Shown here: positions 12,777 through 44,700 of the stretch, one piece after another
Numbering within the stretch: the first letter of the stretch is position 1
Layout: each line of letters begins with the position of its first letter
Assembly (NCBI GenBank): GCA_964247055.1
Contig: OZ176054.1
Location: 1,426,001 to 1,490,000 of the forward strand
Length of the DNA: 64,000 nt
Reading direction: 5' to 3'
Source: Paragordius varius
Taxonomy: Eukaryota; Animalia; Nematomorpha
Translations under genes and position numbers: made by a program
The notes under the pieces: model-generated
Database searches by the model: none
What the model was told of the DNA's origin: nothing
The model's input: only the letters and a program-made list of their open reading frames with translations

Positions 12777-15700
12777 ATGGCTAGTAACTTAGTTCTTCAT
12801 ATATTTGCCTTGATATGTTTCACCGAATTAATGATACCGGGATTGTCGGAATTTGTCGGTAAATACGAAATTCGTCAAATTTTTAAATCATAAATATAAT
12901 GTTTTTTTACTTTCTAGTTTATACCGACTTGGATGCTGGAACCTTTAAATCTATTCCAACGAGTACATCTATCACTTTAATTTTCATATCTTATGTTTTC
13001 TGATTAATATATTACTGATTATTTATAGCACTGCAATTGTATGAAAATCAAAAAGGTAAACAAATGTGTAAAACTTGAAATAATTTGAAACATTGCATTA
13101 AATTCCGTTTTTTCTCGAATACTGTTAAAATGAAGCGTACAAATCGTGAAATATAATAGACAAAACGATTAAAAAATATTAATAACATCAAAATAAATTT
13201 ACACCTTATATGAAACGAACGGCAGATTTGTTCCATTAATAAGTATTTTATAATAGGAATGTTAGGCCAAATATTAATTTATCAAACCATATTTTTAGTA
13301 AAAAATTATTTGAACGAACAAATATAAACTTAGCGATAGAAAAAAATCTTAGCTGGCAGTATACTTGTATAAATTATATATACTATTAAAACCAAAATAT
13401 GAAAAACAGTTAGGTACAAAAAATAATTCATAATGGTGTGAACCAATCATTTTAATCATGTTTACACATTTACAAATATAATTTTTTCATAATCTGAATG
13501 ATGATAAAATAACTAATTAAATATCAATATAAATTTTAGTTTTTTTTATATTGAAAATTATAGATAAAAGTCGTAATATAACCCCATTTCCCAAAAATAC
13601 AAATATAAATCAATCATTTTTTAGATATTATAATGGCAAAAAATTCATTTCAGTGTTGTTAAAATATTTTCCAGCCCGTTGCAAACTTAAAATGCGCATA
13701 CATATTTTTAAAACACCGATTTTTTTCCAATTATATTTTAACGTGTCCCTAACACTCAATCTATCAATGAAACATTGTGTGACAAAATATTTTCAAATGT
13801 TTTCAAAAATACAAGATAATTTTTTAATTTGTCCGATTTGTAGAACATATGTTAAAATGCTTTATCAATTAATATCGCGATGAGTTGGAATTATTTAAAC
13901 AAAATCTAACTATCAATGGTTATAATTGCATTTTATTTAGCATTTTAAAAACAAAATTTTGAAATATATTTGATAACTTAAACGTTTTTTAAGACTTAAT
14001 TTTCAATATATATATTATAGAGTTAATGGAAAAAGGTAATGTTATCTCTTAATTTTTTTCTTAAATAAAAATTAAAATACGGACAAAACGTGATAATTTT
14101 TTTCAAAAGACAACCCTATTTTTTTAAACCAAAATTTATCCATTAAAAATCATTTAATCACAATCAAAAATATAATTGATTGTGTTACCAATTTACATGT
14201 CTATTTTATGCAATTTAAAACAATTGAATAAAACAAACATTTATTATGGTTGTCTTTTATTAAAATATTATTTTACGTTTTGTCCGTATAATTTTTACTG
14301 TAAAATATAATTTTATATTATAGTCGATCAATGGAACACTTCTCTCAAAAGTATGTTATATTATTGCTAATTGAAAATTAAATATTTGCCGTAGTTATAA
14401 ATTTAATAAATTTATTTAAATTAGTAAACGAGGATTACATTATGCCCCTTCGTTATGAGATTTATTCACTCGAAAATCGAAGTAGATTTTTTCTTTTTCA
14501 AATTATTTTTAATTATTTAAAATTTTATATATTTTTTATTTAATTAATTTTTCCTCAAAAAAAGATATACAATGGTTTCCGAATCAGGTATAAACTTATA
14601 ATTTCAGGATACTCCTTGCTAAATTATTGTTTTAAATTTATTTTAAATTGTTAATGATGAGTTTTTGTTCCAACAATATATGTGATATTCTATGGCAAAT
14701 AATTTAACATATAATTTTCTAGTCCATTATTCAATCAAGTTTATTTTATTTTTTATTTTAAATTCTTTTAAATAATAAATAGATATTTATGATTGATTAA
14801 TACGTTTTAATTATAATTATCTAGTTTACAATTATTCCGATGCCGTTTTGGATGATTTAAGTAAAAATTGGGTTTTAGATATAAGTTGAGCAAATATTAA
14901 ATATAGTAAAAATTTAAATTATACAGACAAAATGTAAAAACATCGAAAGACTATTTCATACTTTTTAAACCCAAATTTTTCCTATAAAATTAATTGTTTA
15001 CAATTGTAATTTAGATCTTATTTCATACTTTGCGCAGTATAATGGTTTAAAAAGTAGAAGCGGTTTTAAAAAAATATTTGTCTTTATGTTTTTACGTTTT
15101 GCCTGGATAATTTCAAATTTTAATTTGTAATTTAACTAGTTGAAGATCGGCACAAACTGAAAAGAAAATCACGTTGTCGAACTTACACGTTTGAAAGTAA
15201 ATATTAATACCATTTACAGCTCAAATTCACCCTCGAACAATTCAAATTGTCCCCTAAAATAAATTGTGTGGTTTTGAATATTAATAATTGCCTATATTAT
15301 TTTACATTTTTATCAAATGAAATTTCGTTTAAAATTAACGTATTACTGAAAAAATAATAAACTATGCTACAAAGAAAAATATTTCATATTAATAATTCTT
15401 ACCCCGACACATAAATATTTTTAGGGTGAATATGAATTGTTCGAGCGCGAATTTGAATTGTTCAGAAAATTATGGTGTATCTGAACATTGATTTTTGCGC
15501 CATCCATATACCTATAAATTATTTTTTAATTTTTGATTTTTATATTAATTTTTTGCGCATAACTTTAAATTAGCATTGCATACAAAAATTTTTTTAATAC
15601 ATTTTAATTATGATGGGATATCTCGATAAATAAATTTGTATACTATAAATTTTTTAGAAAATCTAACCAGTGAGGGAATGATTAATGGCTCCCTTGGTAA

Positions 15701-18700
15701 ATAATTATTATTTTCCCAAAATTTAAACAATACCTATTGAAATATTTTAATTTTTGAATATAGTTAAAGAAATATGGAGCAGATACACTTTAGGTAAATA
15801 TTGGTGAAAAAATATTTTAATTTTAATTTTAATTGTGCAGGAATCCCTGATGTCAGCAAGAACAAAGCTGGTCTCGAAAATAAAACATGCTATTATTTAG
15901 CTATCGGCGAATACGCTGAAAAGAAAATACCTAAAAAATTCGATTTAAGTATAAATATATTTTTATTTTTTAAAGTGAAATTCAAATGGCAATATTCATA
16001 TATATTTACTTCAAATTTAGTATCCTATAAAGCTAACTTAGACATTGAAAATGGTATCTATTTTCTTATACAGTAAAGCAATTAAAATTATACTGACAAA
16101 ACGTAAAAATTAAAAGATAATATTTTTTATAAAAAGACAACCATACTTTTTTAACCGTTATTATTCCCGCATAACGTATTTAATTACCATTTTGAATTAT
16201 ATAATTCAGTGTTTTAACGATTTGCAACTCTATTACTTATTTTAAACAGATTAATTATATCAAAAAATGATGATTGAAAAAAATAATTTTCTGATAAAAA
16301 TTTTTTGTCCTTAAAATTTTAAATTTCGTCTGCGTAACTATCTTTATTTAATAAATAATTATTTTATCATTCGTTTTCTGCCAATAGATAGGGAATATCA
16401 CTACATGATTCGCAATTTTACATATTTGGGTAAAATAATTAATCATTTTTATCAAACATTTTATTTCCAACATTTTTAAAAATGTATATATTATAGATTA
16501 TCCACACCGAGCCAATATATGTCCTATTACACAATCTCCATTGGATTACACAACTTTTGGTATTTAAATTTTTGTGCCAATGTTCAAAATTTTTTACGAT
16601 GTTTAAATTGCCTTAAATATTTTTTTAGTTAACAGGAATTCAATGAAAAACAAGCACCATCCTACAATTCGGAACAGGGGTAAACCTCAATCTAATTTTG
16701 TTAATATTAGTTATACGACTGGGTCTTCCTTTTTTTAAAAAAATAAGCTAAGGTCAAAAAAAATTGAAGTAGCTACATTATTATAATAAATCTAAATCGA
16801 GATGCGCCATCTGCCTAGTAACATCTTATATTAGTTTTTATGGATATGATTTCCGCTAAAATATAATTGATTTTGTTTATTTTTTTGTCAAAATATATAA
16901 ATTATAAAAGTTTAGACCATTGTTAAATATCGGCCCCTGGGTTTTAATCAATTAATTATATTGTATTCAGTGTTTTTAATTTGTTGTAAACTACATAACA
17001 ATGGGAACATGTGAACGTGCTAAAAATTATTATCATTTCAAGATTTTTGGATTATCCCACACTTGAATTATTTATAAATATATTTTTGAAATAATTAATA
17101 TATAATTACGATAGATTATAATGCATTGATGGGACTGAGAGGTAATGCCATATATTTTTTCATTAATTTTTTTCTATAAAATAAAATATTTATTTATCTT
17201 GTCAATAGAACGATTGATTAGAGGTATGTATGTTTAATAATAAAATAATGACACATAAATGTCGCCTCTTTTATATTAGTTTTTGAATATAACATAATAT
17301 TATATAGGAAATAATTGGAAAAATTCGTCAAGAGGTAATCTAAAATATATGGACCTAATGTTTCGATTATTTACTAATATAATTAAATATTTTTAGCATT
17401 TCCAAGCGAAAATTTTGAGATAACTCTCTTTTACAATCTGCATTACTTTGCACATCAAGGTATTACATAATTTTCTTATATAAACTTTCATGATATATAT
17501 ATATATATATATATATTCCTTATCAGAAATGTTACCCGATTTTAAGGTAAAATTCGCAATTTGAATTATTTAAAATATATATTATAACAGTCAAGTTATG
17601 AAACACGTATGTATCTGACCCTATTTTTATATATACCATTTACAGTTCAAATTCCCCCTTGAACAATTCAAATTCACCGTTGAACAATTCAAATTCACCC
17701 TTGAACAATTCAAACTTACCTTTGAACAATTCAAATTCACCCTAAAAATAAATTATGTATTTTCGAACTAATATAACTCATTATTAATATGAAATATATG
17801 TTTATGTTATAGTTAATTATTTTACAGTATTATTTTAATTTAAAACAAAATTTTTATTTTTTAAAAATATATGAAAATAAGGGTAATTTATAATCTTAAA
17901 AAATTTATATTTTATTTGAGGGGTGAATTTGAATTGTTCGAGGGTGAATTTGAATTGTTCAAGGGTGAATTTGAATTGTTCAAGGGTGAAATTGAAATGT
18001 AATTGGTATATTTGATTTTTTATTATATATATATATATATACTTTGTGAAAAAAGAGGGTCATTTTGATTTAACGAAATATTTTTTTCTCATGAGATAGC
18101 TTATGACCAGCGTATTCATTTGCCGCAAAAATTTTTATTTGTTGGCAACAGTTTTTGAAATATTGAGAGAAAATCGAAATCGGGCAAAAAGTGAAAATAA
18201 AGGATAATTTTCAAAAAATAATGATAAAATCTGAAATATTATCGTTTATTTTCATTTTAGGAGATATTTTCAATATATAAATAGCCTAAAATCATATAGT
18301 TAGGGTTTCTATAAAATTTCAGGTCAAAAGATGGCGTTTTTCTTTTATCGCACTTAAAAGACAAAAAAATTAATGACACTATATTAAAATAATTTTTTAT
18401 ATGCTAACTAACACAATTAAAATTTTAACATTCATATATTCAGTAAAATAAACTTCTAAATCAAAATAAAACCAGAAATATTGTTTTTATATTTTTGCAT
18501 TTTTTTGTTATCTGGTTTATGAGTATATAAAAAAATTTATACTGTTTTATTTTGGATTCTTACATGATTAAGCATTATTAAGTATGAAAATAGGATTTAA
18601 AAGTAGTAAAATATCAACCAACAATCCTCACAACTTCCTGTAACAAGTCTGTTTTATGACAAATTAATATTTGTATTGGGATTTGTACGGATTGTTGGTT

Positions 18701-21700
18701 GATATTCCACTAATTTTCAATCCTATTTTGCATAAATTATATACTTAATAATTCCCACTCATTTAAGAATCCAAAATAAAACAGTATAAATTTTTTAACT
18801 CATAAACCCGATGACAAAAAATGCAAAAATAAAAAACAAAATTTTTGGTTTTATTTTGATATAGACTTTATTTTCCTGAATAAAATATGAATGTTAAGAT
18901 TTTAATAGTGAGTTTAGGTAGTAAATAATTAAAAAAAAATATAATATAGTTTCATTAAATTTTTTTGTCTTTTAGTATAAAAGAAAAACGCCATCTTTTG
19001 ACCTGAAATTTTATAGAAACCCCAACTATATCATTTTAAACTTTTATATATCGAAAATATCTCCTAAAATGATGATAAACGATAATATTTCATATTTTAT
19101 CATTATTTTTTGAATTATCCTTAATTATCCTTAATTTTCACTTTTTGCCCGATTTCGATTTTCTCTCAATATTTCAAAACCTAGGTTGTCAACAAATAAA
19201 AATTTGCGGCAAATGAATACGCTGGTCATAAGCTATCTCATGAAAAAAAAAATTTTTGCACACTGTGTATATACACCATTACAATTTTGGATTTAATTAA
19301 AACCCCTAGGGACCACCTTAATTTTAGATAATGCTTTAATGCTCTGAAAATTTATTTACCCTTATAAGCTTATTTAATGAAATTACTAGATCCAGAAAAT
19401 GATATATTTTTTCAAATTCATATTTTTATTTAAAGTTGGTTAATTTTATAAAATTCATGATGTATAAAGAGAATATTTTTAACGAATTCCCTTTTATAAC
19501 CTGCGCATTTTAAAACAACAATTTTTTATGTAATTTCAAGTTTAACTATTTCAAAAAACCTGATTGATAAAAAATATAGATATTTTAGTTCTATCAAAAC
19601 CAACTATTGCCAAAATTGTATTATTAATTGTACTTAGTTATCAATTATACGGAATCCGCTATGACGAATCTCAGTAATTTGAAATAATTTTATTATTAAT
19701 TTCAAAAATTATATCTTATTTACATATAGCGAAACATTCACATTCACCCTACTTTCAAAGCTATTATTTCGCAAGTAATTTAAATTTTAACCATTAATGT
19801 GCTATTTTACCCAAAATTAACCCTTAACATACTTTGCAGAACGTTTTCCTTCCCATGGGAAATTGAATGGATCACAAAGTAATATAGATTGATTTTTAAT
19901 AAAATCAAAGTTGAGAGATTTTATTACAATAATTCTTTTTACTTATCATTATAGTACAAGAAATATCGCAATTATATGGTAAACTATTGAAATTTTATAT
20001 CTAAATCTATCAACTATCAATGCTTTTCATTCGCTATTTAGATATGTTTGCTAATGAGCGAGAAGAATTTACAGAAACTCCAAACGCACAAAATTCAGAA
20101 AACAGAACATGTTATTATATAACATTTGGGCGGAGCCTTGATTACCCCTTACTTAAATATTTTTCCAACCGTAGAGGTATATTTATATTTAAATAGTCGT
20201 CATAATTGAGTAAAATAAGTTTTATAAAAAAATATTTATAAACGCATTCGCGTCTTATGAAAAAAAACCAATTCAAATTTTAATATAATCTTTTCTTACA
20301 AAAACCATTAATCAATGTTAATAATTTTACCCGATTAATTTAATTATTTGACTCGTCATCATTTTTTGACTAATAATAATATTAAATAACATTCATCTGC
20401 AGATCTTGTCAATAAATTGTCGGAATTGCGGACCGAATCTCTTAAAAAAGGTATAATATTATATTAATGTCCTTTCTTCAAAAAAATATAAATATATTAT
20501 AAAATTTGTATAGATACCCCTTACGATTACATTGTTAGGAAAACGACATATCTTGGTAAATGTTTTAAATCAACATATATCTATTTCGAAATTTTATTCA
20601 TTTGCATTATGTAAATTTAACATAAAAAATATTTTTTTTAATTTCAAACAATATCAATTTTACAGAAGAAACACATATGCCAAAATTGTGCCCAATCTTA
20701 TTGTCAACCAATATCAATAATTCAAATAAAGGTATAATTTATTTATTTAAAATCAATATTTGAAAAATAATATATTATAACCGCCTTGAACTTGAATTTC
20801 AAACTAAGATTTTTATACCATACATAATATAATTTTTAAATCCGTAATATTTATTTAAAATATATTTTTCCTTTTAAAAAGATATTTGCATAAATCAGTG
20901 CCCCATGGCTACATTACCACATTTTCAGAAAATAAGGAAATATAATATACGAAATACTACACACTATTATTTTCCATTTATTACTGGTTATTCCGTTGCC
21001 AAAAACGTCTTAAATGAAAATATTTACCTTTAAAAACCAACTATATTACTTTAAATTCAATCAATAAAATTTATATAAATATTTAAAATTTGACCCTTTA
21101 TCGAACAACCAATGGTCTTCTTAGAATCCAAGCAATAGATATTCGGGCTTTTGCAATTTACAAAATTTTGATTTTTCTCTTTTTAACGCATTGGACACTG
21201 CTTACAGTTTGCGCATAGAAAAATACTTTAGCCTGCTACCTTTGGGTTAATAATTGGCTTCGTTACAAAATTATATATATATATATTTTTCAAATTGTCA
21301 TCGAAATTTAAAGCATAAATTTTCATAATTAATTGTTATATTTATGTATGCTATGTTAGATAATGTGAAAATACATTTAAAAACAAATATATTGCCGACA
21401 ATGCGTCCCAGTGCCAAAGCACATGGTAAGTATTTAAAAGTTTGAACTTCAAAAAAAATTAAAAATTTATGTTATAAAGAATTATTAAACACATTACGGG
21501 AAATTATATCACATCTATTAGAGTAAACCGCTAATAATAAATTTAATTACGTTATACGGCCAATATTAGGCATTTAGGCCCCCATTAATGCGGTTTATAG
21601 CCTAATGTCTGGCGCTTATTTTAAGAATCATTTTCCCATTTTTTTAAAAAAGAATTTAATACAATGTATTCACTCTACCATAAAAAAATATACATATATA

Positions 21701-24195
21701 CATTTTTGATTATCTTTTAAACCAAATATCCATAATTCATATAAATGATAATTTATATTCATAGAAATGGACGAAAATTTAAATTTAACCCAGATTCATT
21801 TTAAATTATAAATATATATTTTAGATTCCAAGGAACTTAGAAATCTTAAAGGTAATCAATTTTTGAATTTTTAAATATATATATATATATTAAAAAAAAT
21901 AATTTAGAACGTCTAATTACAGGTAAAAAATATATTCAAATGGAATTCTTTTCTAATTTTTCGTATTATAATGTTATGTAATTATACAATAAAAATCGTG
22001 ATAATCCTAATAATTATTTTGACACTATGAATGCTTCTGTGATAGGAAATAATTGGAAAAATCAATCAAAAGGTATTATATTTTTAATTAAAAAAATTTT
22101 ATATGAGGACTGTTTTTATGATATAAAATAAAATATTTTCAATATTATCTCTCTCTAAATATATATATATATATACTTTAAAGCTTCACCCAACGTAAAT
22201 TATGTAATAACCCTGGCCTACAATATGCATTACTTTGATAACCAAGGTATAAATACCGTCATTTTTTTCATTTTGTCGCGATTTTATGCCATATTTTTTT
22301 TATTTACCCTTTCTAGCACCCTTGCCTAAATTTGACGTAAGATTAAATAAATTTATCTAAAATAATTTTAAATTTATGTCCCTGCAGTCTAGTTATGAAA
22401 CACGTACGTATCTTAAAATAATTAATTTTTTTAAAGTAGCCAATTAATTTCGTCAAACATATAAAATGAAATGTTTCGTCAATTTTAAGTTATGCGAATC
22501 TTGGGGTCCTCCCAATTTTACTATTTAGAGCTTATATCTAGCATTCAGACTTTTTATCCCCCAATATATTTTCAATAATTGAAATAAAAACATGGGTTTA
22601 AATGATTTGAGTTTCAATATTCTTGAAGCATTTGGCATTATACCTGTTTAGCAACTTATTTAATACTCTAATTTGCAAATAAAAGAAGAGCTTAATGTTT
22701 TCTTTTACGCTTTTTTGGAACCTAAATATGTCATTGTTTTAAATTAAATTGTTTTGCTCCGCTGTTCTCTAGTTAATACATATAAAATAAAAATTTAGAT
22801 ATATTTTTTTACATTGCCCATTGAAATTTTTTTCCGCCCTTCAATATTTAAAAAATAAAAAAAGAGCTGTTTAATTGGACTTTGGCAAATTGTTGTTTCG
22901 CTTAAAATTGGGATATCTAAATACCCTGAACTAAATTTAAGTTGGTATTTTCAAAAAACAACTGAATAAAACGGCCTAATTTATAATTAAACTTGTATCC
23001 TAATAAACAGTATATAAACGAAATATCTAAGAAAAATTTAGTTTTGAAAAACATATAAAACTACTTATACGCCATTTTTATTTAACAATATTTAACAAGT
23101 TTATATGTTATAGCTAAAATCAAGGCTATTATATTGAAACAAATATGAAAAGTGGTTTGTTTGTATTATTTTTAAATTAAATTTATGCACACATGCCATG
23201 TTGACTTAATTTTCACCTTTAAGTATTACCTTAAAATATGTAATTTCAAGTATTTTAAAATGATATTTTTGTTTTATAAGTATGGCTTCAATTCATTTAA
23301 ACAAGTTTGGGGTATCCAACTACCCCAATTTTATGAAATGACTCTGTAAGTGTTAATAAATTCGTATCAATTAAATACGATGTTTTTGTTATTAGCAAAG
23401 AATGTTTACGGTTAAACATATCCAGAATAGAATTTTTAATATAAAATAATGATATACATCTTTTAACCGTTTTAGTTATCAACTATACGGATACAATTAT
23501 GCCAAACATAAGTAATATCAATATATATAATAAATTGTTATTTATTTTATGTATATATATATATATATATATTTAGACGATCAATCAGTTTGGATCTATT
23601 ATCAAACCTATTATTTTCAAAGTAATTAAATTATTTTTTCCCATAATTTATTACGAATATAACACGATCTTTTTATAGAACGCTTTCCCTCTCAAGGAAT
23701 ACTCAACGGTTCTCAAAGTAAGAAAATTTTATTAAATTATAAAAAATTTAACAACTGTTTTATGCTATAAAATCAAGGGTTTATTTTTCGTTTTTTGAAT
23801 AGTATGTTCACAAAAATTCGCAGAACCAACTTGATGATAAATATAACATGATTTACTTAAGCGCCAAAAATACTAATAATTTTTATCAATAGACTTATTT
23901 GTTGGCTGAACCTAGAGTTAATTATTTAAACGAAATCAATAAGCTTCCAAAACATACAAACGGACATAATATATACCATTTGCACTTCAAGAGTCTACTT
24001 CGATACTTCTAATACGCCCTCGAACAATTCAAATTCACCCTGAAAATAATTTAAGTTTTTTGGGCAGTTCATAAAATCATAGTATAAAATATATTCTTAT
24101 GGCATAATTTATTATTTTTTCAGTACTATATTAATTTTAAATAATTTCATTTTTTATTTTAAGATAAATTTGAATTGTTCACGGGTAAATTAAAT

Positions 24196-24230
<35 letters not shown>

Positions 24231-24685
24231 TTTGCACTTCAAGAGTTTCTTTCCTTCAATACTTCAAGTTGTCCTTAAACATTTAATTTGAATTCAATCA
24301 TAAATTTTGCATGTATTATTTAATATCTTGTCCTAACTTTCTCGATCATTATATACACATTTAAAATTGATATTTTTAATTTAATTCCCGTTTTTCTTTT
24401 GGACTATTTTTTTTTCCAATTTTGATAAATTTTATTCAATTAAAAAATTCTTGAGCGAAAAATTGTTGTAATTATAACTCAGAAAACCTTATATTTTGTT
24501 AAGTCTTATTAATTTTAGATTATTTTTTAATAATTAAATAAAGGGATACGGTTTCTGAATAAAAGAGTTGATGTAGATTATATGGTTAGATCAAGAGAAT
24601 AGGTGAAAATATGTATATGAATGATCACGGTTTAAAAACAAATTAAAAAAGTAAAGGACCATGAAGTGGAATTCGCAATTGGTTC

Positions 24686-24721
<36 letters not shown>

Positions 24722-27700
24722 AAATGTCACTAATACAATTTATGTCATTACTCATTCGAGATTAGGAAAAAAGAGACTTTAAATACTATAATATTTACCT
24801 GAATAATTATTTTTTTTTATTGTTATTTAGTAAACGAAATCTCGCTACTATATGGTAATATAATATATTTTTAAATAAATATCTCATGTAAATATACCTA
24901 AATGACAACAATATATAGATTATAATGCTGACATGCAAAAGGAATATGATCTCTTGATCAAATACCCCAACCCTCAAAGTACAGAAAACAAAACTTGTTA
25001 TTATATGACGTTTGGGCGCAACATTAACAAATCATTGCCTAACTATATTTCCAAACGTGATGGTTAGATTTTTACATTAACTTTTGCTGCTTTGAAAAAA
25101 GATTAGATAATATTGAATTGAAAATTAAATTTATCGAAATTTTAAAAATTCTATAAATTTTCCATTAAATCCCCAAAAAATGTATCCTACATCGTAATTA
25201 AAAACCTTTTTTTATTAAAAAAATATTTTAAACCAAAATTCGATTATTTGATAAAGTTTTCATATAATAATTATATTTTTTTGTGTAGATCTTCTTGCCA
25301 GTTTACGAGAACTACGCACTGAAACTCTTAAAAAAGGTATGCTCTTATTTTTGTTTTAAAATTAACTAAATATTTTAATTTATTGTCAATATTGTAGAAT
25401 TACCCTATAATTATATGGTTCGACAAACGACCTATCTCGGTAAAAATTTAAATTTTAGATAAACTTTTTTCAAAAATTAATTTTGTGCATATTAATAGAT
25501 CAATCCTTACCCAATCTTTGCCCCATTCAAGCTATTGAAGAGATACTGCCATCGAATAAGACATCAAATAAAGGTATGTTCATTCACTTTTTCTTCACTT
25601 TTGAATAATTTAAATTTTTTTGTTCAGGACTTAAATTCTTCTTATATATCTAATAAAGTAGTTTCAGAAAAACCAGCAGCTCAAAACATAAATGTCACTG
25701 TGAATTCCACAAAAGGTCCATATAATTTGGATCCAATACCCGAACCTCATATACTTAGTAAGATACTAACTGGAATATTTTTTATTAAATTTGCAGAACT
25801 GCGCAGTTTGTACTATTTAATTAATATTTATAGAAAGTTAAATAATTAACTGATAAAAATATGATTATGTTTATATAAACTATTGTCCAGCTTTTTTACC
25901 AATTGTTGTACTTGAAACTAAGTGTATGTTCAGTTTAATTTATTTTCCCGATCGATATTTAGATGGTCCAATTGAATCAAAAACTACGGTAGCCTTGCCA
26001 TCTATATTACCAAAAGACCAAGCACGGAGTAATATTATAGTATAAACAATTTTAAGAGTCTTGGTTTTCTAATAAATATCAAAAGTTCCCAAACCATTTT
26101 TGTAGTTATAACAGGGCAATAGGACGTTTAATAACTTTTCATTATAAATTAAGTCGAAAACTATGTTTATGTAGTTTATTTAAAAAGTATAAACATAATT
26201 AGTATTTTTCCTGGGGATTTTAACCTGTCAAAAGACGGTATGACTCTTATCAATAATGTCCTCTACGGTCAAACCAATCAATTATAAGACAAAAAAAATC
26301 CATTTTTCTATTAAATGTGTTTATCTTCTTAATTCAAAAATTATTTGAAATATCTCCTTCTGGAAATTTAGCCATAATTATTCCTTAATTTTTGATCCTT
26401 TTATTAGTTTAAGTTATGTTAAATTTCTACGTTTATTCGTTTAGTTGTGATTGCCGGTAATTTGAATCAGATTATATTATGTTGTCGTTTAGAATTATAA
26501 TTGAATGTCACTCTACTAATAAATAAATTTCTTTATTTTCCAGGGGCGACGCTTACAGGCATAGCTGGTAAATACTATTTTTTGCTCTATATTCCTAACA
26601 ATTACATAACAGCATTGCACTATATTTATGAATATGGAATAGAGATGTACAGTCATGTAGACTTTATATTGTTAAAGATTTACTTTTTTTCGTTAATTGG
26701 GTATTAATATTTGGTAAAGAATATAAAAACAAGAGCAATATGGTATTACCATATCATATTCTTTAAAAAAGTAAAAAATGAAGGGGAAGGGCGTCGGAAA
26801 TCTTTGGTAAAAATGAAAATACACTAACTACTAACCCTTCACTTAAATTTGATGGATATTTTTAATGTTAAATTTTGAGAATATCATAGCAATTTATGTT
26901 AACATTTGGAATATTGTTGTTACGTAATTAGATGCGGAATTTTGTGGGTTTTTATCTTTAATAATAATTTAATAAATTGTAAAATGGGTATTTTATTATT
27001 TATGTTAAATTCAATAATTACTATTTTTCAACATGATAAATACCTGTATTAATCGATATTGGTATTTTATATGGTTGTTATTAGTAATTAAAATACAGGT
27101 TATATATTTGTTAAAATTTAAGTAGATTTTGGATTGTTTTTGTTTTTATGTTATTCATTGTCAATTTTTATCTATTGACATTTTAATCAGGTAAAATTGC
27201 GGTTTTTAAATTTAGTCAAATTTAATTTTTTTGTTTTTTATTTAACATTGTTAATTGTAATTAATTACATATTGTGATTTTAAAATTACAGGTGAAAATT
27301 GTGGTTTTTAATAAATTTAGTAAAATTGAATTTTTTTGTTTAGGATTTGCATTGTAATTTCAAAAAAACTGGTAAAAATGGCGGTTTCAAAATTTTTTTT
27401 ATTGTTAATTGTAATTAATTACATATTGTGGACATTTTAATAATTACAGGTAAAAATTGCAGTTTTTAATAAATTTAATAAAAATTGAGTTTTTGTTTTT
27501 TAGGATTTGCATTGTTAATTGTAATTAATTTATTTGGTCATTTTAATAAATACAGGTAAAAATTGCGGTTTTTATTACTAATTGAATAGCAATAAATGTC
27601 GATATCTGTATATCCCAATTTTTACTGTAATATTTATGTATATATAGGTGTGGGTGTGGCAATCGGGACAGCGACCGGAACGGCTGCAGCCTCAGCTGGA

Positions 27701-28859
27701 ACCGGTCTTGTGGTTGAAGGGGGAACTGCTTTGGCCGCTGGGGCTGAGACCGCTTTTGAATCTCTCACAGCTGGAAGTGAGACCTCTTTAGAATCTTTAA
27801 CGGCTTCTTCAAGTTCTTCAAGTTCATCCTCTTCCTTTACGGCGGCACTACAAGCCAACAGAGTCATCAGCAAAGGAACTGCCAAAGCAGTTGCATCTTT
27901 CGCCGTGCCCCCGACTGCGTATGGGGCTTATCGAGCCTCCGCTCATTCCTCCCATTCTGAAGGCGGTCCTTCTCATATCAGTAGTTCGGATGTACATACC
28001 CATATTCACACTGAAGTACACGAGGAACAACCTGAGGGCCCTGTCACCATTAGCAAGTTACAACCTAACCCAAATTCTATACGGATTGAACATGAAAGAC
28101 TGCTTGGTGGAGGGACAGACGGTCCCAGTTCTCCGAGCAGTGAAAGTCACTCATCGGATTCTTCGCAAACTCAGCATCAATTCAATGTTCCTTCCAAAAA
28201 ACGACCAGCTGAGGACAGACCACAAGGACGTAAGTCATTTTGAAATAATATTTTGAAAATTTCATTAATATTTTTTATACCCTTTTAGCTGAACCGAAAT
28301 CACAAAGATCAGGTAAAATTTTGTTAAACTGGAAAATTTAGTTGTGAAAAAAAATTAAGAGTTATACTCAATTAATTACTAAACATAAAATACCAATTAT
28401 TTTATAGATTCCGAATTATTGGAATCCTTACTTTCCCGAAAAAGATCCCGGACTCCAGTTAAAGCCCCTAAAAAAACTGTTAACCCTGCCTCTGCCCCCA
28501 CCCAAATACATGAGCCTTCGACATCTTCCGTTGTCCAACCCTCTCATCCTAATGCTGCGTCTAAACAGTTTGAGAGGCCTGCACAATCTACTCGAGATTC
28601 CAATAAACCCAGACAACAGGTATCGAAACTTTTGCAACAACCAAATGTTTTAAAAGCCTCTAAACCAAGGCGGCCACCAACCTCAAATCGTGTCATTCCT
28701 GAAACTGTGGAGTCACCGAGCATCCCAGACACGCCTGATACACCAAGAACCCTTTCCTCGAATCCAGGTTTATTTTATAATAAAATAATATGGCTTATTA
28801 CAGGGGTCTCCAACATGGGTCTGACAAAAATAGAAAATATGATCACCAAGAAAATTTGA
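12777..28859 (+). CDS. Secreted/surface multi-repeat protein built from symmetric phase-1 small exons (5' part of the MEG-like locus)
   Basis: Exon 12777-12858 encodes the signal peptide MASNLVLHIFALICFTELMIPGLSEFV. About 45 GT-AG exons follow, mostly multiples of 3 (e.g. 12918-12962, 13029-13055, 15841-15948, 20042-20176, 24919-25062, 25662-25757, 25963-26028, 27648-28229, 28289-28312, 28408-28767). Three domain copies carry EN(K/R)TCYY, Y.Y..R..TYLG and CPI motifs, followed by a Gly/Ala hydrophobic stretch and a Ser/Pro-rich region. A possible stop lies at 28857-28859 with AATAAA at 28911. A few junctions (14.4-14.6 kb, 26.0-26.4 kb) are unresolved. Confidence 0.8.
14062..14300. mobile_element. 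MITE family D (pogo/Tc1-like, TA-CAGTAAA...TACGGACAAAACG TIR)
   Basis: Inverted ends AATACGGACAAAACGTGA / TTACGTTTTGTCCGTATAATTTTTACTG-TA, with an internal AAAAGACAACC / GGTTGTCTTTT pair. Confidence 0.75.
14904..15128. mobile_element. MITE family D, degenerate
   Basis: TAGTAAAAATTTAAATTATACAGACAAAATG ... TTTACGTTTTGCCTGGATAATTTC. Confidence 0.6.
15208..15477. mobile_element. MITE family B
   Basis: TA-CCATTTACAGCTCAAATTCACCCTCGAACAATTCAAA ... GGGTGAATATGAATTGTTCGAG...ATGG. Confidence 0.75.
16071..16345. mobile_element. MITE family D
   Basis: TA-CAGTAAAGCAATTAAAATTATACTGACAAAACGTAAAAAT left end; degenerate right end ...TTTCGTCTGCGTAA. Confidence 0.65.
17634..18008. mobile_element. MITE family B (TA-CCATTTACAGTTCAAATTC TIR; 21-bp repeat TTGAACAATTCAAATTCACCC)
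   Basis: About 5 tandem 21-mers on the left arm, about 3-4 inverted 21-mers on the right arm, TA-flanked. Confidence 0.85.
18042..19267. mobile_element. ~1.2-kb foldback (near-complete palindrome) element, Tc1-like right terminus
   Basis: Arms ~18081-18632 and ~18685-19250 are reverse complements (e.g. CTCATGAGATAGCTTATGACCAGCGTATTCATTTGCCGC / GCGGCAAATGAATACGCTGGTCATAAGCTATCTCATG) around a ~50-bp spacer. The right end reads TA-CACAGTGTGCAAAAA on the minus strand. Confidence 0.85.
23974..24199. mobile_element. Chimeric A/B MITE
   Basis: The left end is family-A TA-CCATTTGCACTTCAAGAG. It is followed by the family-B repeat CGAACAATTCAAATTCACCC and a B-type right end TTTGAATTGTTCACGGG...AAATGG-TA. 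Confidence 0.6.
24228..24690. mobile_element. MITE family A, degenerate
   Basis: TCATTTGCACTTCAAGAG left end after a (TA)n tract. The internal GATACGGTTTC...AGTTGATG...AATAGGT matches the 45801 copy. Confidence 0.55.
27085..27575 (+). repeat. Intronic tandem repeat, ~6 units of 78-106 bp, each centred on (T)ACAG|GTAAAAATTGCGGTTTTT
   Basis: AG|GT junctions with GT at 27099, 27191, 27292, 27450 and 27556; a TG|GT variant at 27372. Confidence 0.8.
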
Positions 28860-29129: not shown

Positions 29130-30131
29130 ATGAGAACTTGCGTCCTGTGGAAATTTTAGAAGAATCAAACCAGCCTGGAAGTATGCTATAATTCTAGTTA
29201 AATGACTTATCACATTATAATACTTCCCGAATATATAAAACGTAAACGAATTAAATACAAAGAGTCTCTATATTATCCACATTTATTTGCTTTATAGAAC
29301 ACCAAAACGTTAAAGATTGTAAGACTTTCATATATTAATTATTTTGTTTAGAGTATCAATTATTTGTATAAATAGTTTTAAAAATGTTAAAATATTTAAA
29401 ATTAAAAGTTGATCCTATATATATATATATATTGGCTTAAAACCAACATTTTTCCAAGCAAACGCAACATTATTTCAAGCAAGCTTATTTTTTCATTCAA
29501 ACGTACTTTTTCAAGAAAGGACAATTGAATTGTCTTGAAATAATGTTGGGTTTGCTTGAAAAAATGTTGCTGTTGACTGAAAAATGGTATGTATGTCATT
29601 AATTTTTAATAACTATGAAAAAATTTTTCAGAATTTTTGAAAATTAATTATTAATACTTGAGTGCCTATTACTAAATGGTTGTATTTTATATATTTCATA
29701 TATTATTTTTTATATACATTCAAGGGCTAAGAAGTAATTATTACTGCTAATATATTTGTGATGGATACAGTAACGAGAGCTATTAATAATTTCAGCTTTT
29801 ATAAATAGCTTAAACTTAAAGTGTAAAATGTATTAAATGTCAGTTGTCATGTATATTTTTATTTTCAATATTTGAATTGATAAATAAAATTATTGCAACA
29901 TGACAATGCAAATAAAAAACCCTTTTACCCATTTAAAATTCTGAACATGCCAATAATATCTCTCGTTAAATTTTACACAGATTGAATTTTGATAGAAAAT
30001 CAATTTTAAATAATTTTTTAATTCAAATATAGTAAAATTTATTTTCATATTAATTAACTTTATATTAATGTTTTACGAAATCCAAATATACAGGATCTCA
30101 CGGTATTCCTGGTAAGTCACCGTTAAATATA

Positions 30132-30168
<37 letters not shown>

Positions 30169-34268: not shown

Positions 34269-34324
<56 letters not shown>

Positions 34325-37016
34325 TTTAAAAATTGGGAAATTATTTTTTTATCAGTAAATTTGGCCGTATACTTTATATTTTTATTTAAATTGAGGAAAA
34401 ATTATTTATTTATTAAAATTTTTTTCTATCCATAAATTATTTTTAATGGTGTCTATAGATAAAAATAAAATATACATAACATTATCGGTAGGTCTCCAAG
34501 ATCCCCCCAATCAAATCAAATATATGTCTATATAAAAAATTCTTTTTTTAGAAAATTACAATTTTATAATTTTTATATAATTTTTTTGGCTATACAGCAA
34601 ATAACCAGCATTCACGTGATGTTGCAGATCCCCTACAAAATATCCAGTCTATAGAAAGTTGCATTTTCATATTTTAATCTTAATTAGCTCTGATAATATC
34701 TGATACCGATTCACCACGTCGTAATATTTTTTATATATTCAAACATATTTTATTGGAAAATCTAATATTTTCTCCTATTAGTTCCGTCATACCCATCTAT
34801 TCACTCGCAACAAAGTAGAAATTAACTATTTTTTTACTTTTAACAATAAATTAAAATTATATACTATTTAGCCTTGATCAGGGAGTCACCAGCTCATGGT
34901 AAACTTTTGAATCCAATATTATATTATTTGGTACAGGTTATTATATAAAAAACGATCAGACATTTATGAGAAAGAATATTTAACACAACAAAATTACAAA
35001 TAAGATTTGACTTAGAGTGGTTAGGTTTTTCTTTGTGGAATAGTGTCCTTAAAAGTAAATAATTTGAAATTGATTGCGCGATGAATCTCTTATATGTTAC
35101 AGCATGCTATTTTTATTTTTTGTTGAAGCGTACATCTGATTATTATGCCAAAAGAATCTTACAAAATTCATTGAAATTTAAACAGTTGTGGCTTTAAGTA
35201 TATATGTATATGATAGATAGCATAATTACGAATTAATTTTAGCATTTTAATTAAGTTATGAGCTAAAAAGATACATTATCAATAGATAAGCCTTTATAGA
35301 TACGCATTGGGGGAAGAATAATATCATTTTTAGAAAAATAGTTTCTATAATCGTATAAATTGCCAAATAGATTATATAGCTAAAATTTGTTGATTATAAT
35401 TTTTGCAGATAAAAAATCGCAAAAACGGGTCAAACCACGCTGCTCGTCAAACATATTTTTTTGGTAAAAGAGTAGTATTTAAAACATATATTTTAAAAAA
35501 GTTCTGTCTTTTCGAAATAAGTCATTGCTTTATTTAACCAAAATAGAAAAGTTAATATATTTTAATCATGAATTTATGTATATATTATAAATTTACAGCA
35601 AGTAATATCCCTTCGCTTCAAGGCTCAGATATACCAGACATTAATTCGATAGAAAGTTGCATTTTCATATTTTAACCTTTATTAGCTCAAAGAATATCTG
35701 ATACGAATTCACCACATCGTAATATTTTCGATATTTTCAAAATTATTTTATGAACTAATCTTTTCTCCTATTAGTTCCATCCTACCCATCTTCTATCCAT
35801 TCGCAACAAAGTAAAACTTAGACTATTTTTTTCTCTTTTAATAAATTATTACTCATTATAATTTTAGCCCTAATCAGGGATTCCCCAGCTCATGGTAAAT
35901 TTTCAACAAAATATTTTATTTTATTCTAAACAATAAAAATCGATCAGATATTTAAGAACGCGACCGACTTTCAATGAAAATCAAAATAATTTTAACAACA
36001 TTTTACACAATAATCTGAATGACATTTAAAATTTTTTTTTTAATAATTTAAAAAATGTAATTTAAAAATTATTATTCAGCTATAAAAATATAATTGATAC
36101 TTCAAAAATAATAAAAAATTGGTAAAAGTATTTGTAAGGACAATGTGTGTCGACAAATTTAAGATATGTCTTATAAAATATATGTATTATAATATTAAAT
36201 AGTTGCCAAATGTCAAAAACATACATTTTCAGTAGATATATTGACGTCATATAGCGCACAGGATATAATGTATCATTTTAAAAATATATTCTCTTTAATC
36301 TTATAAATTTGCTAAAATTTTTCAGATTTAAATTTAACTGCTACATGTGAAAAAACGAAAAAACAGTTGTTTCACATTTAAAACAAGTGTGCCCAATTTA
36401 AATTTTCCTTCTATACATTATAAAATCATCACATTCTGTGCTTTTGAAGTCGGGTGCATATAACCTTATTTACCCAAAATAAAGCGTATAGCAATCAAAT
36501 TAATAAAACGATATATTTAAATTATACAGCAGGTAATATCCCTTCGCTTCAAGGTTCAGATATACCAAACATTCACTCGGTAGAAAGTATACATTTCCAT
36601 TTTTAACCTTTTTTAGCTATAAGGAATTCGGGTATTGATTCAAGTCTTAAAATTTTTTATATATTTAAAATTATTAATCTAATCTTTCTCCTATTAGTTT
36701 CATCCCCATCTATTCACTCACAACAAAGTAGAACTTAAACTATTTCTTCATTCAAAAATAAATTATTAATCAATATAATTTTAGCCTTAATCAGGGATTC
36801 ACCAGCTCATGGTAAATTTTCAACAAAATTCCATTTTATTATAAACAATAAAAATTGATCAGACATTTATGGACGCGACCGACTTTCAACAAGAATCAAA
36901 ATAATTTTAGCGATAGGTCCAAATTTTAGTCAAATTATTTAACTTATTGAAATTATAATCTTTAATTCGTAGCAGTCCACACAAAATAAATATCTTGATG
37001 AAATAAAATTTAGCAT

Positions 37017-37047
<31 letters not shown>

Positions 37048-40000
37048 TCCCTAATCTTATAACAAACTTGTACCATTTTTTGATTAACAGATAGAGTAAA
37101 GCTGGAAATTATACGGACAAAACGTAAAAATAAAACGACAAATATTTTTTCTGAAAGAAAACCCTACCTTTTTGTCGTTGTAGGGATAATTAAGAAAGTA
37201 ACAAAAGTAAAAATAGATAAAGTTATTTATTCGTTTTCTAGTCTTTATATAATATTTTTGTGTAAACATAATTTGCATGATTAAAACATCAAGAAACTAA
37301 TGGATATTTTATTTACATAATACAAAAATATAAAAACATAGACTATGCAAATATCACTAAAATTTATATCATACATAAAAAATATAATTAAAATTTGTAT
37401 ATATACACTTGAAGACCCTAATTTTTCCTACACCATTATAATTTTAATTAATACAATTGGTGTTAATAACACTGGACAACAAATTTTTCTGCCACTCGAG
37501 TTTTTTGCATATTACCATCTTTTAACAGTTAATCAGAATTAAATTATAATTTCACCTAAAAATTTTTGAACTTGATTTTTCTGATTATGCGTCCTCTTTA
37601 TCAAAATTTTACTAAAAAATGTTTTGCTTTGAAAATATACAAGAAATGCTGTTTGTAATACATCATTCGAAAGAGTAATAAATACTCTACAAAATGTTTA
37701 CTAAAAGTTTTACCAACAGTTAATATTGGAGTTAAGAAGCGACAAACTTACAAAGCGAGAGCGTTTTCCTAATTAAAATACTTTTAAAAATATTGGATGA
37801 AAATAGCGCCAACTTTTTCTAGATGGCAATGAGTGTTCAAAAACGACAAAAGAAAGTTTTTTTGATTAAATTATTTATTGCTTGTATGTCATTCAAACAG
37901 CCATTTTAAAATTTGTATTTTAAAAAATTACCATCTCATCAATATTATTTTATTTACTTTATTAGGCTTAAAATTTCGAAATTTTAAGACTAAATAAAGT
38001 TTAAGGTGTTCTATAATTTTTTCAACGAATATTTAAATTTACATTTTTAACGATGCATTTTATTATCCACTTCTATAAATATGATAATATAATTTTTATT
38101 AAAAAAGCAAACCAAAAGCTTTTTTTAAAAATTGTTATAAATTTTTATGTGTAACCCTAATAATTATATTAAAATAATTTCTATAATTTTCAAATTTGTT
38201 ACTCTGTAAAAATTATTGACTTATTTAAGGGTTGAAAATATGAACCCAAATAACTTTTAAATCAGATTGATTTGAATAAGAGTTTTTCGCGCTCTTCGAA
38301 TGATATAAAATATAAGGCTCTATATTTAAAACTTTTAATTTTGAAAATTTCATGTTAAATCGGAGATCGATAAATCCTAATAAAATTCTTAGGTGCTAGA
38401 CCAATTTTTTTAAGATATACTATTTATGTACTTTAATGACATAATTTAAATTTACAAGAATGGTAGTTAAAAAAGTCAAATGTTGTCTAGTATAATTTAC
38501 AGATCTATTCCTTGTTAACCACAACAATAAAACATTGAATGGATTGCCTTTGAAAAGTGTGTCTATTTAAAAAATATTTTTCTTTATATTTTTAGGATTT
38601 GTTCGTATAATTTTAATACTGTAATAAAAAATTTAAGATTTTACTGTATGATCTGAATGATACAAAAAAATGTAATTAAAAAATTAATATTCTAGCGATG
38701 AAAAATTAAATTGGTACTTAAAAAATTGGTAAAAATAAGGTAAATGTGTGTCGACAAATTTAACATATGTTTCATAAAATATATGTATAGTACTATATTT
38801 CAATATTTGCTAAATTCCAAAAGCATACATATTCAATAAGGGATTATTCAGGTCAGATGGCGGGTAGGGGCATAAATGTAAAATTATAAATTCTCTATAA
38901 ACTTATAGAATTGCATTATAAAAAAAGAAACAGTTGTTTTACGATTAAAACAAGTGTGCCCAATTTAACTTTTGGCTCTAATCAACATTATTGAATCATT
39001 ACCTTTTGTGCTTTTGAAGTCGGGTGCATATAACCTTATATACCCAAAATAGTAAAGCGTATGCTATATTACCAACAAATTAATAAACGATATATTTATA
39101 TTACAACAGCAAGTAATATCCCTTCGCTTCAAGGTTCGGATACACAAGACATTTATTCGATGGAAAGTTTGAATTTTCATTTTTAACCTTTTTAGCTATA
39201 AGAAATTCGGATATCGATTCACCACGTAAATTTTGATATTCATGTTATAATTACAAATAAATATATTTTTGTCAGATCCCTCAAACAACCCATCTATTCA
39301 CTCGCAACAAAGTAAAAATTGAATTGTTTTATTGTATCTGAATTAATTAATAATAAAAAATTATTTTAGCCGAGATCTTAGATTCACCTTCGCATGGTAA
39401 GTAATTGCTTTCAAAAATATAACTATTTTATATTTTAATTGATGAACATATCTTAAAAAATTATCATCAGATGTTTTTGAATATGGACATTCTAACACAA
39501 AAGTGATAAATGGTTTAAAATATAAGACATTTCAAAATCAGCATCAGATAACTGCAAATATATCACAAAAATATTAATAATGTCCCTGTTTTAATGGATG
39601 CAAAATCCATAAAAAAGACTTATTAGTTAGCACTCCATTATCCTTTAAGGTGGTTATATATCCCGAGCGATTTGAAATTCGAATATCTTAAAAAATATAT
39701 AAGGTATTATAAGCCGAATTTAAAAATAGTTTTTATGGAACATTATACAAAAAAATTTAAAATTTTGAAAAAATTCTCATCTCAAACTTTTTTGCGGCCG
39801 TTTTTTTTCTAAAAATTTTTGCTGGCTAAGTGCAACAGGCAAATATATGTATATGAAAACAAGAAAATGTAAACAATTAACTTTCAGAATATTTTGGCTT
39901 CATTTTACCAGGAAAACTTTATTTTGTGTTGTAACCGTGTTTTGGAGCTGTCCCAGTTTTCGGCTCTACAAGTCACAAAAAATATTAGTTTTTTTCTCAT

Positions 40001-43000: not shown

Positions 43001-44539
43001 ATAATATAAATAAATTTAGATGTTTGGGTTTAATTAATTATGTATTTTAAAAGTATACTAAATTATGTAAAAATCTTGTTATAGGGTTAAAATACTGAAA
43101 TATCGCCCCATTTCAAAATTTTAATTTACTTTAAAGTTTAAAAATATATATATATATATATATATATCGATATAAGCTTACTAGAAAAAAAAATTTCTCC
43201 AACTCACCATGTGAAATATAGTTATTTACAATAGGAAGGAATCAATTCTTTACTTTATATAATTAGCACCATTTCACTATTTTTACTGATATTTATCAAA
43301 AAATATAAATTATTATTTTAAAATTTACTAAAATGCCATTTTTTATATTATGAAAGCTGATTTCGCAAAAAGCCAAAATCTTTGATGTTATAATATGTTA
43401 AAAATTGTAAATTATTCCATAGATTTAGCCCTAAACATTCGGGATATTCCAAGTAAATAATTAAAACTTATTCTATTTAATTTTGTTATCTGGTTTAATA
43501 TATGATTTACTTTTGAATTTTTAAAATAAAATAATAATAATAATAATAACCTTAACAATCACTTTTTATCGATGATATATTTATTGGGGTTTTTAGTTTA
43601 ATAATTTAAAATATTTTTTCTATTAGGATTGAAAAGCATTCTACAAAGTACGTAACACCTAATATTTTTTTATATAATACTTTTGTAATTTTTTTCACGA
43701 GTGAATCAACAATTCTATTAGTAAACTAAAAATAAACTGATTTTTCAACATTTTTTCCGCCCTATAATTTTTATCTGAATTAACCTGTTACATCCCAAAA
43801 TATTTTTAACTGTTTCTATTTAATAATTAAATGTATTTTTTAGCATTGAAATATCTCTTTTTTTTGTCTTGTTCGCATAGACTCGATATAATTAATCTGT
43901 TTAAAAATGATTTAATTCTTTCATAAGCTTTATTTCCAACAAATTATAAAATTCTGTTCATATAAAAATTATTTAAATTTTTGAAATTACCCATTTTTCC
44001 ATCAAATTCCATTATATATATATATATAATATTTATGTGTTCAAGAATATAAGCAATTGATAGAGGGTAAAATAATTTTGTAATTTCTTTCCATGAGATG
44101 GAATAATAAAATCTTTAATTTTTAGAATTGCATGTCTCTGAATTACCATTTCCACGTATATAATGCCATTTGTATAATTCTAATTCAAAATTTATAACAT
44201 CTATTATATATATCTGATAGAATACAATAATTATGGTATTAATATAATTTTGCTATACATACAACATACAAATTTCAAAAGTTTTATGACTGTATGGTAT
44301 AAAATAATTTTTTTAGAATATACAGGATTCCTAAATTGGCTAACGGGTAACATCAATACTATTTAAGATAAAAATTTTTACAAATTAATTTAAAAAGCCA
44401 AAATTAATGAAATTTCTTTTGGAATTTATTAGAGGCCGAACGCATGGAACTCGGACGTAAAAATACCTTTTTTAATTATTTCTGCCGAAATTGTAATATT
44501 TTAAATATTTTAGCCGTTACCGCATTTAACATTCATTGA
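29130..44539 (+). CDS. Micro-exon-rich coding region (3' part of the MEG-like locus or a separate gene)
   Basis: About 40 GT-AG exons of 15-60 bp, all multiples of 3 and open in phase 1. Examples: 29130-29180, 30094-30111, 30227-30256, 30645-30680, 30744-30758, 32569-32628, 32654-32686, 34157-34186, 34232-34258, 34598-34657, 35599-35655, 36530-36586, 39110-39166, 39370-39396, 41798-41845 and terminal 44514-44539. The C-terminus reads ELMAQAYREFEQMRTNIYNRIKIKMDECMIELQDWMRNLALNIRDIP...RFLNWLTEAERMELGPVTAFNIH*. Confidence 0.78.
29430..29590. mobile_element. Short degenerate MITE family C copy
   Basis: CAACATTTTTCCAAGCAAACGCAACATTATTTCAAGC ... GTTTGCTTGAAAAAATGTTGC...AAAAATGG-TA. Confidence 0.6.
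30293..30562. mobile_element. MITE family D
   Basis: TA-GAGTAAAAATTGAAATTATACGGACAAAACG ... GGTTGTCTTTT...CCGTTTTATCCGTA. Confidence 0.7.
31582..31845. mobile_element. MITE family D, degenerate
   Basis: AAATTACACAAACAAAACGTAAAAATT...AAAAGACAACC left arm; TTTTATGTTTGTC right arm. Confidence 0.55.
33737..33977. mobile_element. MITE family B, degenerate
   Basis: TCATTTAAACTTCAAATTGACC...CCCTTGAACAATTT ... AAGGGTGAATTGGAATCGTAAATGG-TA. Confidence 0.6.
34269..34321. repeat. Compound (CA)n(TA)n microsatellite
   Basis: Directly visible. Many other (TA)n tracts occur in introns (e.g. ~17492, 23550, 24198, 24688, 30136, 43144, 44668, 63022). Confidence 0.95.
37094..38621. mobile_element. ~1.5-kb insertion bounded by family-D termini
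   Basis: Left TA-GAGTAAAGCTGGAAATTATACGGACAAAACG; right TTTGTTCGTATAATTTTAATACTG-TA. It interrupts the intron of cassette copy 4, whose flanks match the uninterrupted intron of copy 3. Confidence 0.6.
40066..40264. repeat. Small inverted-repeat element
   Basis: TTTAATAACAACATAATATGGAGATTA...CTACCTTGGCAATTA / TAATTGCAAAGGTAG...TAATCTCCATATTATGTTGTTATTAAA. Confidence 0.7.

Positions 44540-44667: not shown

Positions 44668-44700
<33 letters not shown>

Follow-up and report, generated by a model that had tools for sequence, protein, structure and literature searches.

A predicted 93-exon gene of nearly uniform phase-1 micro-exons in Paragordius varius that may encode an orphan type I membrane glycoprotein

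Schistosome micro-exon genes (MEGs) consist of 10-20 exons of 6-81 nucleotides (nt), mostly 15 nt, separated by introns of 0.1-5 kb, and encode secreted products, the longest of 189 amino acids (aa), for which exon skipping has been documented. In the bicycle genes of aphids, which have 5-25 micro-exons, the exons nearly always begin at codon position 2 (PMC9168663). The aphid megacycle gene encodes, in 118 exons, a protein of 2,092 aa that begins with a signal peptide and includes 15 internal repeats whose introns lie at shared positions (Stern and Han 2022, PMC9168663). No megacycle orthologues were found outside aphids (PMC9168663). Here, we analyzed a 64,000-nt stretch of contig OZ176054.1 of Paragordius varius (positions 1,426,001 to 1,490,000; hereafter the window, to which all coordinates refer) and found that 93 GT-AG exons on its forward (+) strand can be joined into one open frame of 1,502 codons and 4,509 coding nt, from an ATG at 12777 to a TGA at 44537-44539. 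We propose that this locus is a single gene whose product is an orphan type I membrane glycoprotein with a repeated ectodomain, a Gly/Ala-rich transmembrane (TM) helix and a Ser/Pro-rich tail, a reading to which we assign a probability of about 0.6. That the locus is a genuine protein-coding gene has a high probability.

The closest published analogue is the aphid megacycle. Both genes have an N-terminal signal peptide, ~100 micro-exons with ~16-18 aa per exon, internal exons that enter at codon position 2 and hence follow introns of phase 1 (here 87/91), and internal tandem duplications with shared intron positions (here three ectodomain repeats, R1-R3, and five tail cassettes, c1-c5). Unlike megacycle, however, the present gene has a TM helix, a 750-aa tail and a median intron of 75 nt, and, in contrast to both bicycle and megacycle, it lacks the CYC motif and contains ~230-aa repeats with two Cys each. 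No sequence similarity to megacycle was detectable. An earlier prediction, made from the letters of this window, had suggested that the system may be much larger than MEGs; a claim of record size does not survive the comparison with a gene of 118 exons and 2,092 aa in the same exon phase.

The likeness to MEGs, which the original prediction had put first, holds for the architecture: a signal-peptide exon ending in phase 1 is followed by a long series of symmetric micro-exons whose lengths are divisible by 3, save for an occasional exon, and in both cases the product is an orphan and the gene was overlooked by gene finders. It fails for product size and membrane anchor, as the present locus differs in having 93 exons, 1,502 aa, a predicted membrane anchor, repeats that are conserved and look folded, and introns that are mostly short. 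Rather than a small secreted peptide, the model yields a 1,502-aa predicted type I membrane glycoprotein with constrained repeated ectodomains. Searches with the largest exons and an exon profile, rather than with the spliced protein, gave no match to any MEG family.

Uniform 1-1 exons are also characteristic of elastin-type genes, whose cassettes can be added, duplicated or skipped in frame and which encode a secreted matrix protein from alternating hydrophobic and cross-linking exons. Our locus shares with them the uniform 1-1 phase and, in the tail cassettes, the arrangement of one motif per exon within a repetitive low-complexity region, but it has no sequence or domain relationship to elastin. 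According to Patthy's rule, modular extracellular proteins arise by shuffling of 1-1 exons, where one or few exons make up one known domain. As in such proteins, the intron behind the signal peptide is in phase 1 and 1-1 modules make up the extracellular part; unlike in them, one ~230-aa repeat is spread over 15 exons, and Pfam recognized no known domain in the largest exons. The gene is set apart from all of these systems by its membrane anchor, long tail, absence of CYC motifs, short introns and, probably, its phylum. A search of the open-access literature pairing hairworm with exon or microexon listed no paper on micro-exon genes in hairworms.

Gene model and evidence for a coding chain

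The model was built with an exon chainer, a dynamic-programming procedure that combines donor and acceptor position weight matrices with codon log-odds, carries no phase preference and was run at several exon penalties. In the subsequent curation, we dropped candidates that lay in high-copy repeats, lacked paralogue support or appeared only at low penalty (18100-18190, 24164-24184, 26784-26806 with 27344-27371, 32844-32976, 35186-35445, 38596-38604 and those 3' of 44539), and added four exons on the support of a paralogue or of a 29-nt intron. The resulting locus spans 32 kb and has an intron density of ~20 per kb of coding sequence (CDS), equivalent to 16 aa per exon. The internal exons are small, with 84/91 measuring 12-66 nt, a median of 33 nt and 43 of them at most 30 nt long; applying the MEG-type size criterion (6-81 nt, multiples of 3), 85 internal exons of at most 81 nt hold 66% of the CDS. 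Direct reading showed that the small AG..GT exons after exon 1 are open only when read in phase 1. The four internal exons that depart from the 1-1 phase form two 20+16-nt pairs (17527-17546 with 17591-17606, parted by a 44-nt intron, and 22317-22336 with 22388-22403), which are the same exon pair in two copies, R1 and R2, of the ectodomain repeat. The original prediction of roughly 85-90 small and nearly all phase-1 symmetric exons, led by a signal-peptide exon ending in phase 1 and including two complementary 20+16 pairs, is confirmed. In the model, exon 1 measures 82 nt and has the donor G/GTAAAT. The end points of the original prediction, 12777 and 44539, match the ATG and TGA of the model exactly. 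The exon count is uncertain by about ten, as the weakest ~8-10 micro-exons are not secure and the real number lies at roughly 85-100.

The phase pattern recurred when the chainer was cross-validated. Upon applying parameters derived from the exons of one half to the other half, with start and phase left free, we recovered 37/44 and 21/27 exons in phase 1-1 in the unseen halves, whereas reverse-complement and block-shuffle controls produced chains of 2-24 exons, 0-4 of them in 1-1, with no phase preference. Exons have a GC content of 0.40 compared to 0.22 for introns, declining from codon position 1 to position 3.

Paralogous copies within the gene provided evidence that does not depend on the finder. 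R1, R2 and R3 match exon for exon at an amino acid identity of 33-54% overall (R1-R2 39%, R2-R3 54%) and keep three sequons and two cysteines in common, while their introns are no longer alignable and the DNA similarity of R2 and R3 is limited to exons. Among these repeats, the proportion of nonsynonymous differences (pN, 0.29-0.47) is lower than that of synonymous differences (pS, 0.67-0.76; for R1-R2, 0.41 vs 0.72), pointing to purifying selection on the ectodomain exons. The younger tail cassettes can be aligned through their introns, with an exon identity of 0.72-0.82 vs an intron identity of 0.58-0.75, and the gaps inside their exons measure 3 or 6 nt; a single 5-nt gap lies at a shifted donor boundary in c5.

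Polymorphism supported the same frame. In genomic contigs of public runs, we encountered a second haplotype with 15 listed variants inside whole codons, of which 9/15 are synonymous in the predicted frame compared to 3/15 and 2/15 in the other frames (27% expected, P = 0.008). In the 24-nt exon 24831-24854 of R3, the second-haplotype variants are 3/3 synonymous. This second haplotype, or second copy, diverges by ~4-5% over the short stretches 24750-25027 and 27633-27742, intron indels included, and heterozygosity seems to be high. The public runs that contain the locus include its introns and are genomic; one of them, labelled as a second organism, has the identical locus sequence and thus offers no cross-species contrast.

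Predicted product

Hydropathy analysis revealed only two hydrophobic segments in the model, residues 1-25 and 720-745. The top 19-residue window, residues 5-23 with a Kyte-Doolittle (KD) score of 2.06, lies in exon 1 and corresponds to the predicted signal peptide, and the sole internal segment (residues 722-740, KD 2.01) is built from two micro-exons of 12 and 24 nt together with the first part of a 582-nt exon. All 20 N-x-S/T sequons are located N-terminal of this TM helix, compared to 9.2 expected for that part. Together with the signal peptide and the single TM helix, this one-sided distribution of sequons characterizes the product as a predicted type I membrane glycoprotein, with a layout of signal peptide, short N-terminal region, three ~230-aa two-Cys repeats (the third truncated), stalk, TM helix and ~750-aa tail. 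The whole model contains 9 Cys, with C-Y-Y occurring three times and C-Y-C not at all. We infer that the protein may serve as a receptor or in adhesion at the surface, with a tail that would act as a phosphorylatable scaffold.

The extracellular part begins with exon 1 (12777..12858), which carries the start codon and the signal peptide. Five N-terminal micro-exons (12918-12962, 13029-13055, 14021-14035, 14324-14350 and 14425-14481) follow, all 1-1 and surviving every chainer penalty. Aligned exon for exon with R2, repeat R1 (14825..17606) has 15 exons of 36, 57, 39, 30, 108, 33, 42, 63, 51, 27, 15, 27, 63, 20 and 16 nt. The 15 exons of R2 (19638..22403) measure 36, 45, 39, 24, 135, 48, 42, 66, 66, 27, 15, 27, 63, 20 and 16 nt and share their boundaries with R1 and R3. 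R3 (23476..25573), identified by paralogue alignment and pN/pS, represents the first half of the unit only, in 8 exons of 36, 45, 39, 24, 144, 48, 42 and 75 nt. The final two N-glycosylation sequons lie in the stalk, which is encoded by two 1-1 exons, 25662-25757 (96 nt) and 25963-26028 (66 nt). Two GC-rich micro-exons of 12 and 24 nt (26445..26567), bounded by strong sites (TAG acceptor and GTAATT donor, CAG acceptor and GTAAAT donor), encode the beginning of the TM helix. The helix ends in the large internal exon 27648..28229 (582 nt, 1-1, GC 0.51), which is open over 193 codons without a Met, has in-phase AG/GT flanks and continues into a Gly/Ala/Ser-rich stretch of the tail.

The tail, with 17% Ser and 9% Pro, includes two unusually large GC-rich exons, the one of 582 nt and one of 360 nt. 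The latter (28408-28767) and the 24-nt exon 28289-28312, both 1-1 and found by the chainer, encode a basic Ser/Pro-rich portion, after which come seven micro-exons (29130-29180, 29298-29318, 30227-30256, 30645-30680, 30744-30758, 31164-31202 and 31352-31372) that are all 1-1 and survive all penalties. Five tandem copies of a 4-exon cassette with one short motif per exon make up the next part. The older copy c1 (32569-32592, 32654-32686, 34157-34186 and 34232-34258) has the same motif order as c2-c5 and holds a 1.47-kb intron. The other four were delimited by cassette alignment: c2 (34598..34898) with exons of 60, 33, 33 and 27 nt, c3 (35599..35894) with 57, 33, 36 and 27 nt, c4 (36530..36811) with 57, 15, 30 and 27 nt, and c5 (39110..39396) with 57, 30, 36 and 27 nt. 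The second exon of c4 is shorter through a shifted donor, its length still being a multiple of 3. Beyond the cassettes lie five tail micro-exons (40882-40899, 40955-41002, 41070-41087, 41147-41197 and 41276-41299), the first of which is lost at the highest penalty and is less certain. The C-terminal region has a more ordinary, less biased and helix-like composition and consists of nine micro-exons (41798-41845, 41924-41965, 42027-42047, 43429-43452, 43627-43647, 44126-44155, 44221-44235, 44326-44346 and 44433-44456), with 43627-43647, 44221-44235 and 44326-44346 being the weakest. By direct reading, the 26-nt terminal coding exon (44514..44539) is entered in phase 1 and ends with the TGA.

The original prediction recognized no family for the product, and our exon-level searches agree. 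Pfam assigned no family to the six largest exons, a word-indexed search for homologous proteins with the 193-aa exon gave no match, the ESM Atlas returned glycine-zipper-like noise only (top score 0.74), and a metagenome scan for related loci found none. An exhaustive search of 1.84 billion representatives with a profile of three paralogous ~45-aa exons yielded a single match, an unrelated FNIP-repeat protein sharing a short motif, which we rejected.

Introns and the uniform phase

Intron sizes are bimodal, with 55/92 below 100 nt and a mode at 60-80 nt. Splice signals are uniformly strong, with A at +3 in 84/92 donors and T or C at -3, after a T-rich tract, in 91/92 acceptors. Of the 43 exons of at most 30 nt, 36 have at least one flanking intron shorter than 100 nt. 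We suggest that the micro-exons would be recognized by intron definition, given that most introns measure 45-100 nt, that their GTA(A/T) donors are strong and that their TAG/CAG acceptors are rich in T, a mode of recognition that would take away the usual difficulty of tiny exons.

The shortest introns lie in the tail. Four paralogous introns in c2-c5 are only 29-30 nt long (34658-34687, 35656-35685 and 36587-36616, of 30 nt each, and 39167-39195 in c5, which is 1 nt shorter than its paralogues). All copies keep the GT and the AG, with a TTAAC-like branch motif ~10 nt ahead of the latter, and translation through these introns meets a stop. Because c3 has no upstream alternative donor, a 57-nt exon followed by a 30-nt intron is the only consistent reading there.

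Several of the long introns are largely made of repeats found elsewhere in the window, and the longer introns may be short ones that took up transposon insertions. Two clear insertions of miniature inverted-repeat transposable elements (MITEs) lie inside introns that would otherwise measure ~55-130 nt; intron 14036-14323 is one such case, 81% of it being repeat. The MITE family is ~230-260 nt long with terminal inverted repeats and occurs in both orientations in several introns (14062-14294, 30305-30565, 16067-16165, 31578-31670 and 37091-37173). The idea that MITEs themselves made the introns (introners) was rejected, as each element is embedded in an intron that would be short without it, between unique flanks of 26-29 nt, and most of the short introns are mutually dissimilar.

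The uniform phase appears best explained by history, of which two rounds of block duplication are visible. The gene may have grown inside a phase-1 frame set by the phase-1 intron behind the leader, through exon addition and tandem duplication of exon blocks (three times for the ectodomain and five times for the tail cassette). The frame survives an addition or duplication only if the exons involved are 1-1 or form a compensating pair like 20+16, so that nearly all introns would come to lie in phase 1. Random intron gain into a pre-existing domain, by contrast, cannot have been the source of 13/15 introns in one phase. The EGF-like exons of an upstream neighbour gene (3062-3137 and 3516-3569) have phases 1-2 and 2-2, and uniform phase is therefore not common to every gene here.

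Alternative readings and genomic setting

Several observations weigh against one gene for a type I membrane glycoprotein. The 746 residues after the TM helix (residues 757-1502, encoded by the exons within 27750-44539) contain 0 sequons vs 9.4 expected from shuffles, although cassette repetition lowers the effective sample for this count, and a cytoplasmic location does not explain why a Ser/Thr/Asn-rich tail should avoid sequons. Unusually, the TM helix has its basic residues on the outer side. No homologue from outside the genome backs the frame at the level of exon searches, and splice and codon scores are the only support for ~8-10 micro-exons. Nothing on 23400-29399 came from the two RNA-labelled runs of the species, which are small (24-30 million letters). 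Finally, constitutive splicing was deduced from conservation rather than observed.

A rival reading, that of the original prediction, is a MEG-like diversification system, in which the uniform phase would serve regulated or stochastic exon skipping and generate many variants per gene, perhaps at a host interface. Each 1-1 exon is removable in frame, and out of all conceivable skips, 3,989/4,005 junctions (99.6%) are free of stops. The tail is a series of modules, each exon with its own motif, and of duplicated cassettes in which alternative donors keep the frame, and MEGs of similar design are spliced variably. However, the freedom from stops is a by-product of the donor consensus, as just two exons end in T, and splice sites are strong throughout. 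The ectodomain exons have been kept singly across three old repeats under purifying selection, such that skipping would break a domain, and a 1,502-aa membrane protein is not a short secreted peptide. On balance we regard this explanation as unlikely, if conceivable. The ectodomain exons look constitutive, and the tail is the more likely site of variation; a host or immune role would be pure conjecture. In its widest form, the idea would be that a parasite lineage outside flatworms and insects (probably Nematomorpha) evolved, independently of both, a large class of genes with micro-exons of uniform phase 1, with the 93-exon gene as its extreme member and with the tail, and perhaps the ectodomain, combinatorially spliced into receptor or surface variants, amounting to a third convergent origin of the MEG/bicycle design that is now membrane-anchored. 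We consider this proposal speculative and somewhat less likely still.

The region might also comprise more than one gene, such as one for the ectodomain and another for the tail, or a gene in partial decay whose distal exons have fallen out of use. No transcript across the region is available, the composition shifts sharply at 27648, where exon GC rises from 0.37 to about 0.5, and a 1.1-kb repeat-filled intron directly precedes this exon. Yet exon 27648-28229 has no Met and is in phase 1 at both ends, the TM helix becomes complete only when the exons at 26445, 26544 and 27648 are joined, a single frame is open through all 93 exons, and no well-scoring in-frame terminal exon occurs before 44514. 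We therefore think either of these readings improbable and retain a single gene.

An untranscribed gene-finder artefact, that is, a chain of chance open AG..GT intervals in AT-rich DNA, would be in keeping with the abundance of short open intervals and with the clearly false exons that the lowest-penalty runs insert within transposons, but it is already largely refuted and thus most improbable, since the controls reach only 2-24 exons without phase preference, and the paralogue conservation, pN < pS, in-frame indels and frame-specific synonymous variants are all independent of the finder. Homology with the aphid bicycle/megacycle family, which would fit the same exon phase, signal peptide, around 100 micro-exons and repeats with common intron positions, has a negligible probability in view of the lacking CYC motif, the mere 9 Cys, the TM helix and long tail, the short rather than long introns and the failure to find megacycle orthologues beyond aphids (PMC9168663).

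The surroundings of the gene are AT-rich and repetitive. GC over the gene is 0.22-0.26, and the window abounds in remnants of DNA transposons, has a satellite of ~10 kb at about 49.8-59.9 kb and contains no conserved gene that we could find. The AT-richness and the transposon remnants fit a published hairworm genome, which has 26.9% GC and 64% repeats, mostly DNA transposons. Upstream lies the end of another gene (2514-3569, +), where one exon encodes an Ig-like Y-x-C motif and two others, of 76 nt (phases 1-2) and 54 nt (phases 2-2), share an EGF-like domain between them; Pfam on these short exons returned nothing significant. Tandem-repeat arrays with a 21-bp unit, often as inverted pairs (foldback-like), occur at 17631-18011, 15207-15464, 11039-11134, 46264-47286, 60189-60491 and 61377-61632; they belong to two related 21-mer families, and the intron of 2 kb that separates R1 from R2 consists in large part of one copy. 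The segments 24000-24200 and 26600-27600 are extremely high-copy in the genomic runs, with summed contig depths of up to about 9e5 vs about 400 for unique sequence. The second of them, in the intron before the 582-nt exon, has internal repeats of ~100-260 nt and many rearranged joints. Near-identical ~30-nt palindromic microsatellites of the (TA)n type are found in introns and just past the 3' end of the gene (24198-24228, 24689-24717, 30135-30166, 34288-34321 and 44667-44700).

If the gene model is true for a horsehair worm, the design of a signal peptide followed by uniform phase-1 micro-exons would have arisen a third time, after the MEGs of flatworms and the bicycle genes of hemipterans. 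All three origins would be in parasites, and here the design would build a large membrane protein. Intron-rich animals reach roughly one third of the intron density seen in this CDS. Together with its 29-30-nt introns, this density would make the locus a good test case for the recognition of very small exons. The Gordionus genome was reported with 10,320 genes and a BUSCO score of 71.6%. Standard annotation will miss or shatter genes of the kind described here, which could be one reason why the gene counts and BUSCO scores of hairworms are low.

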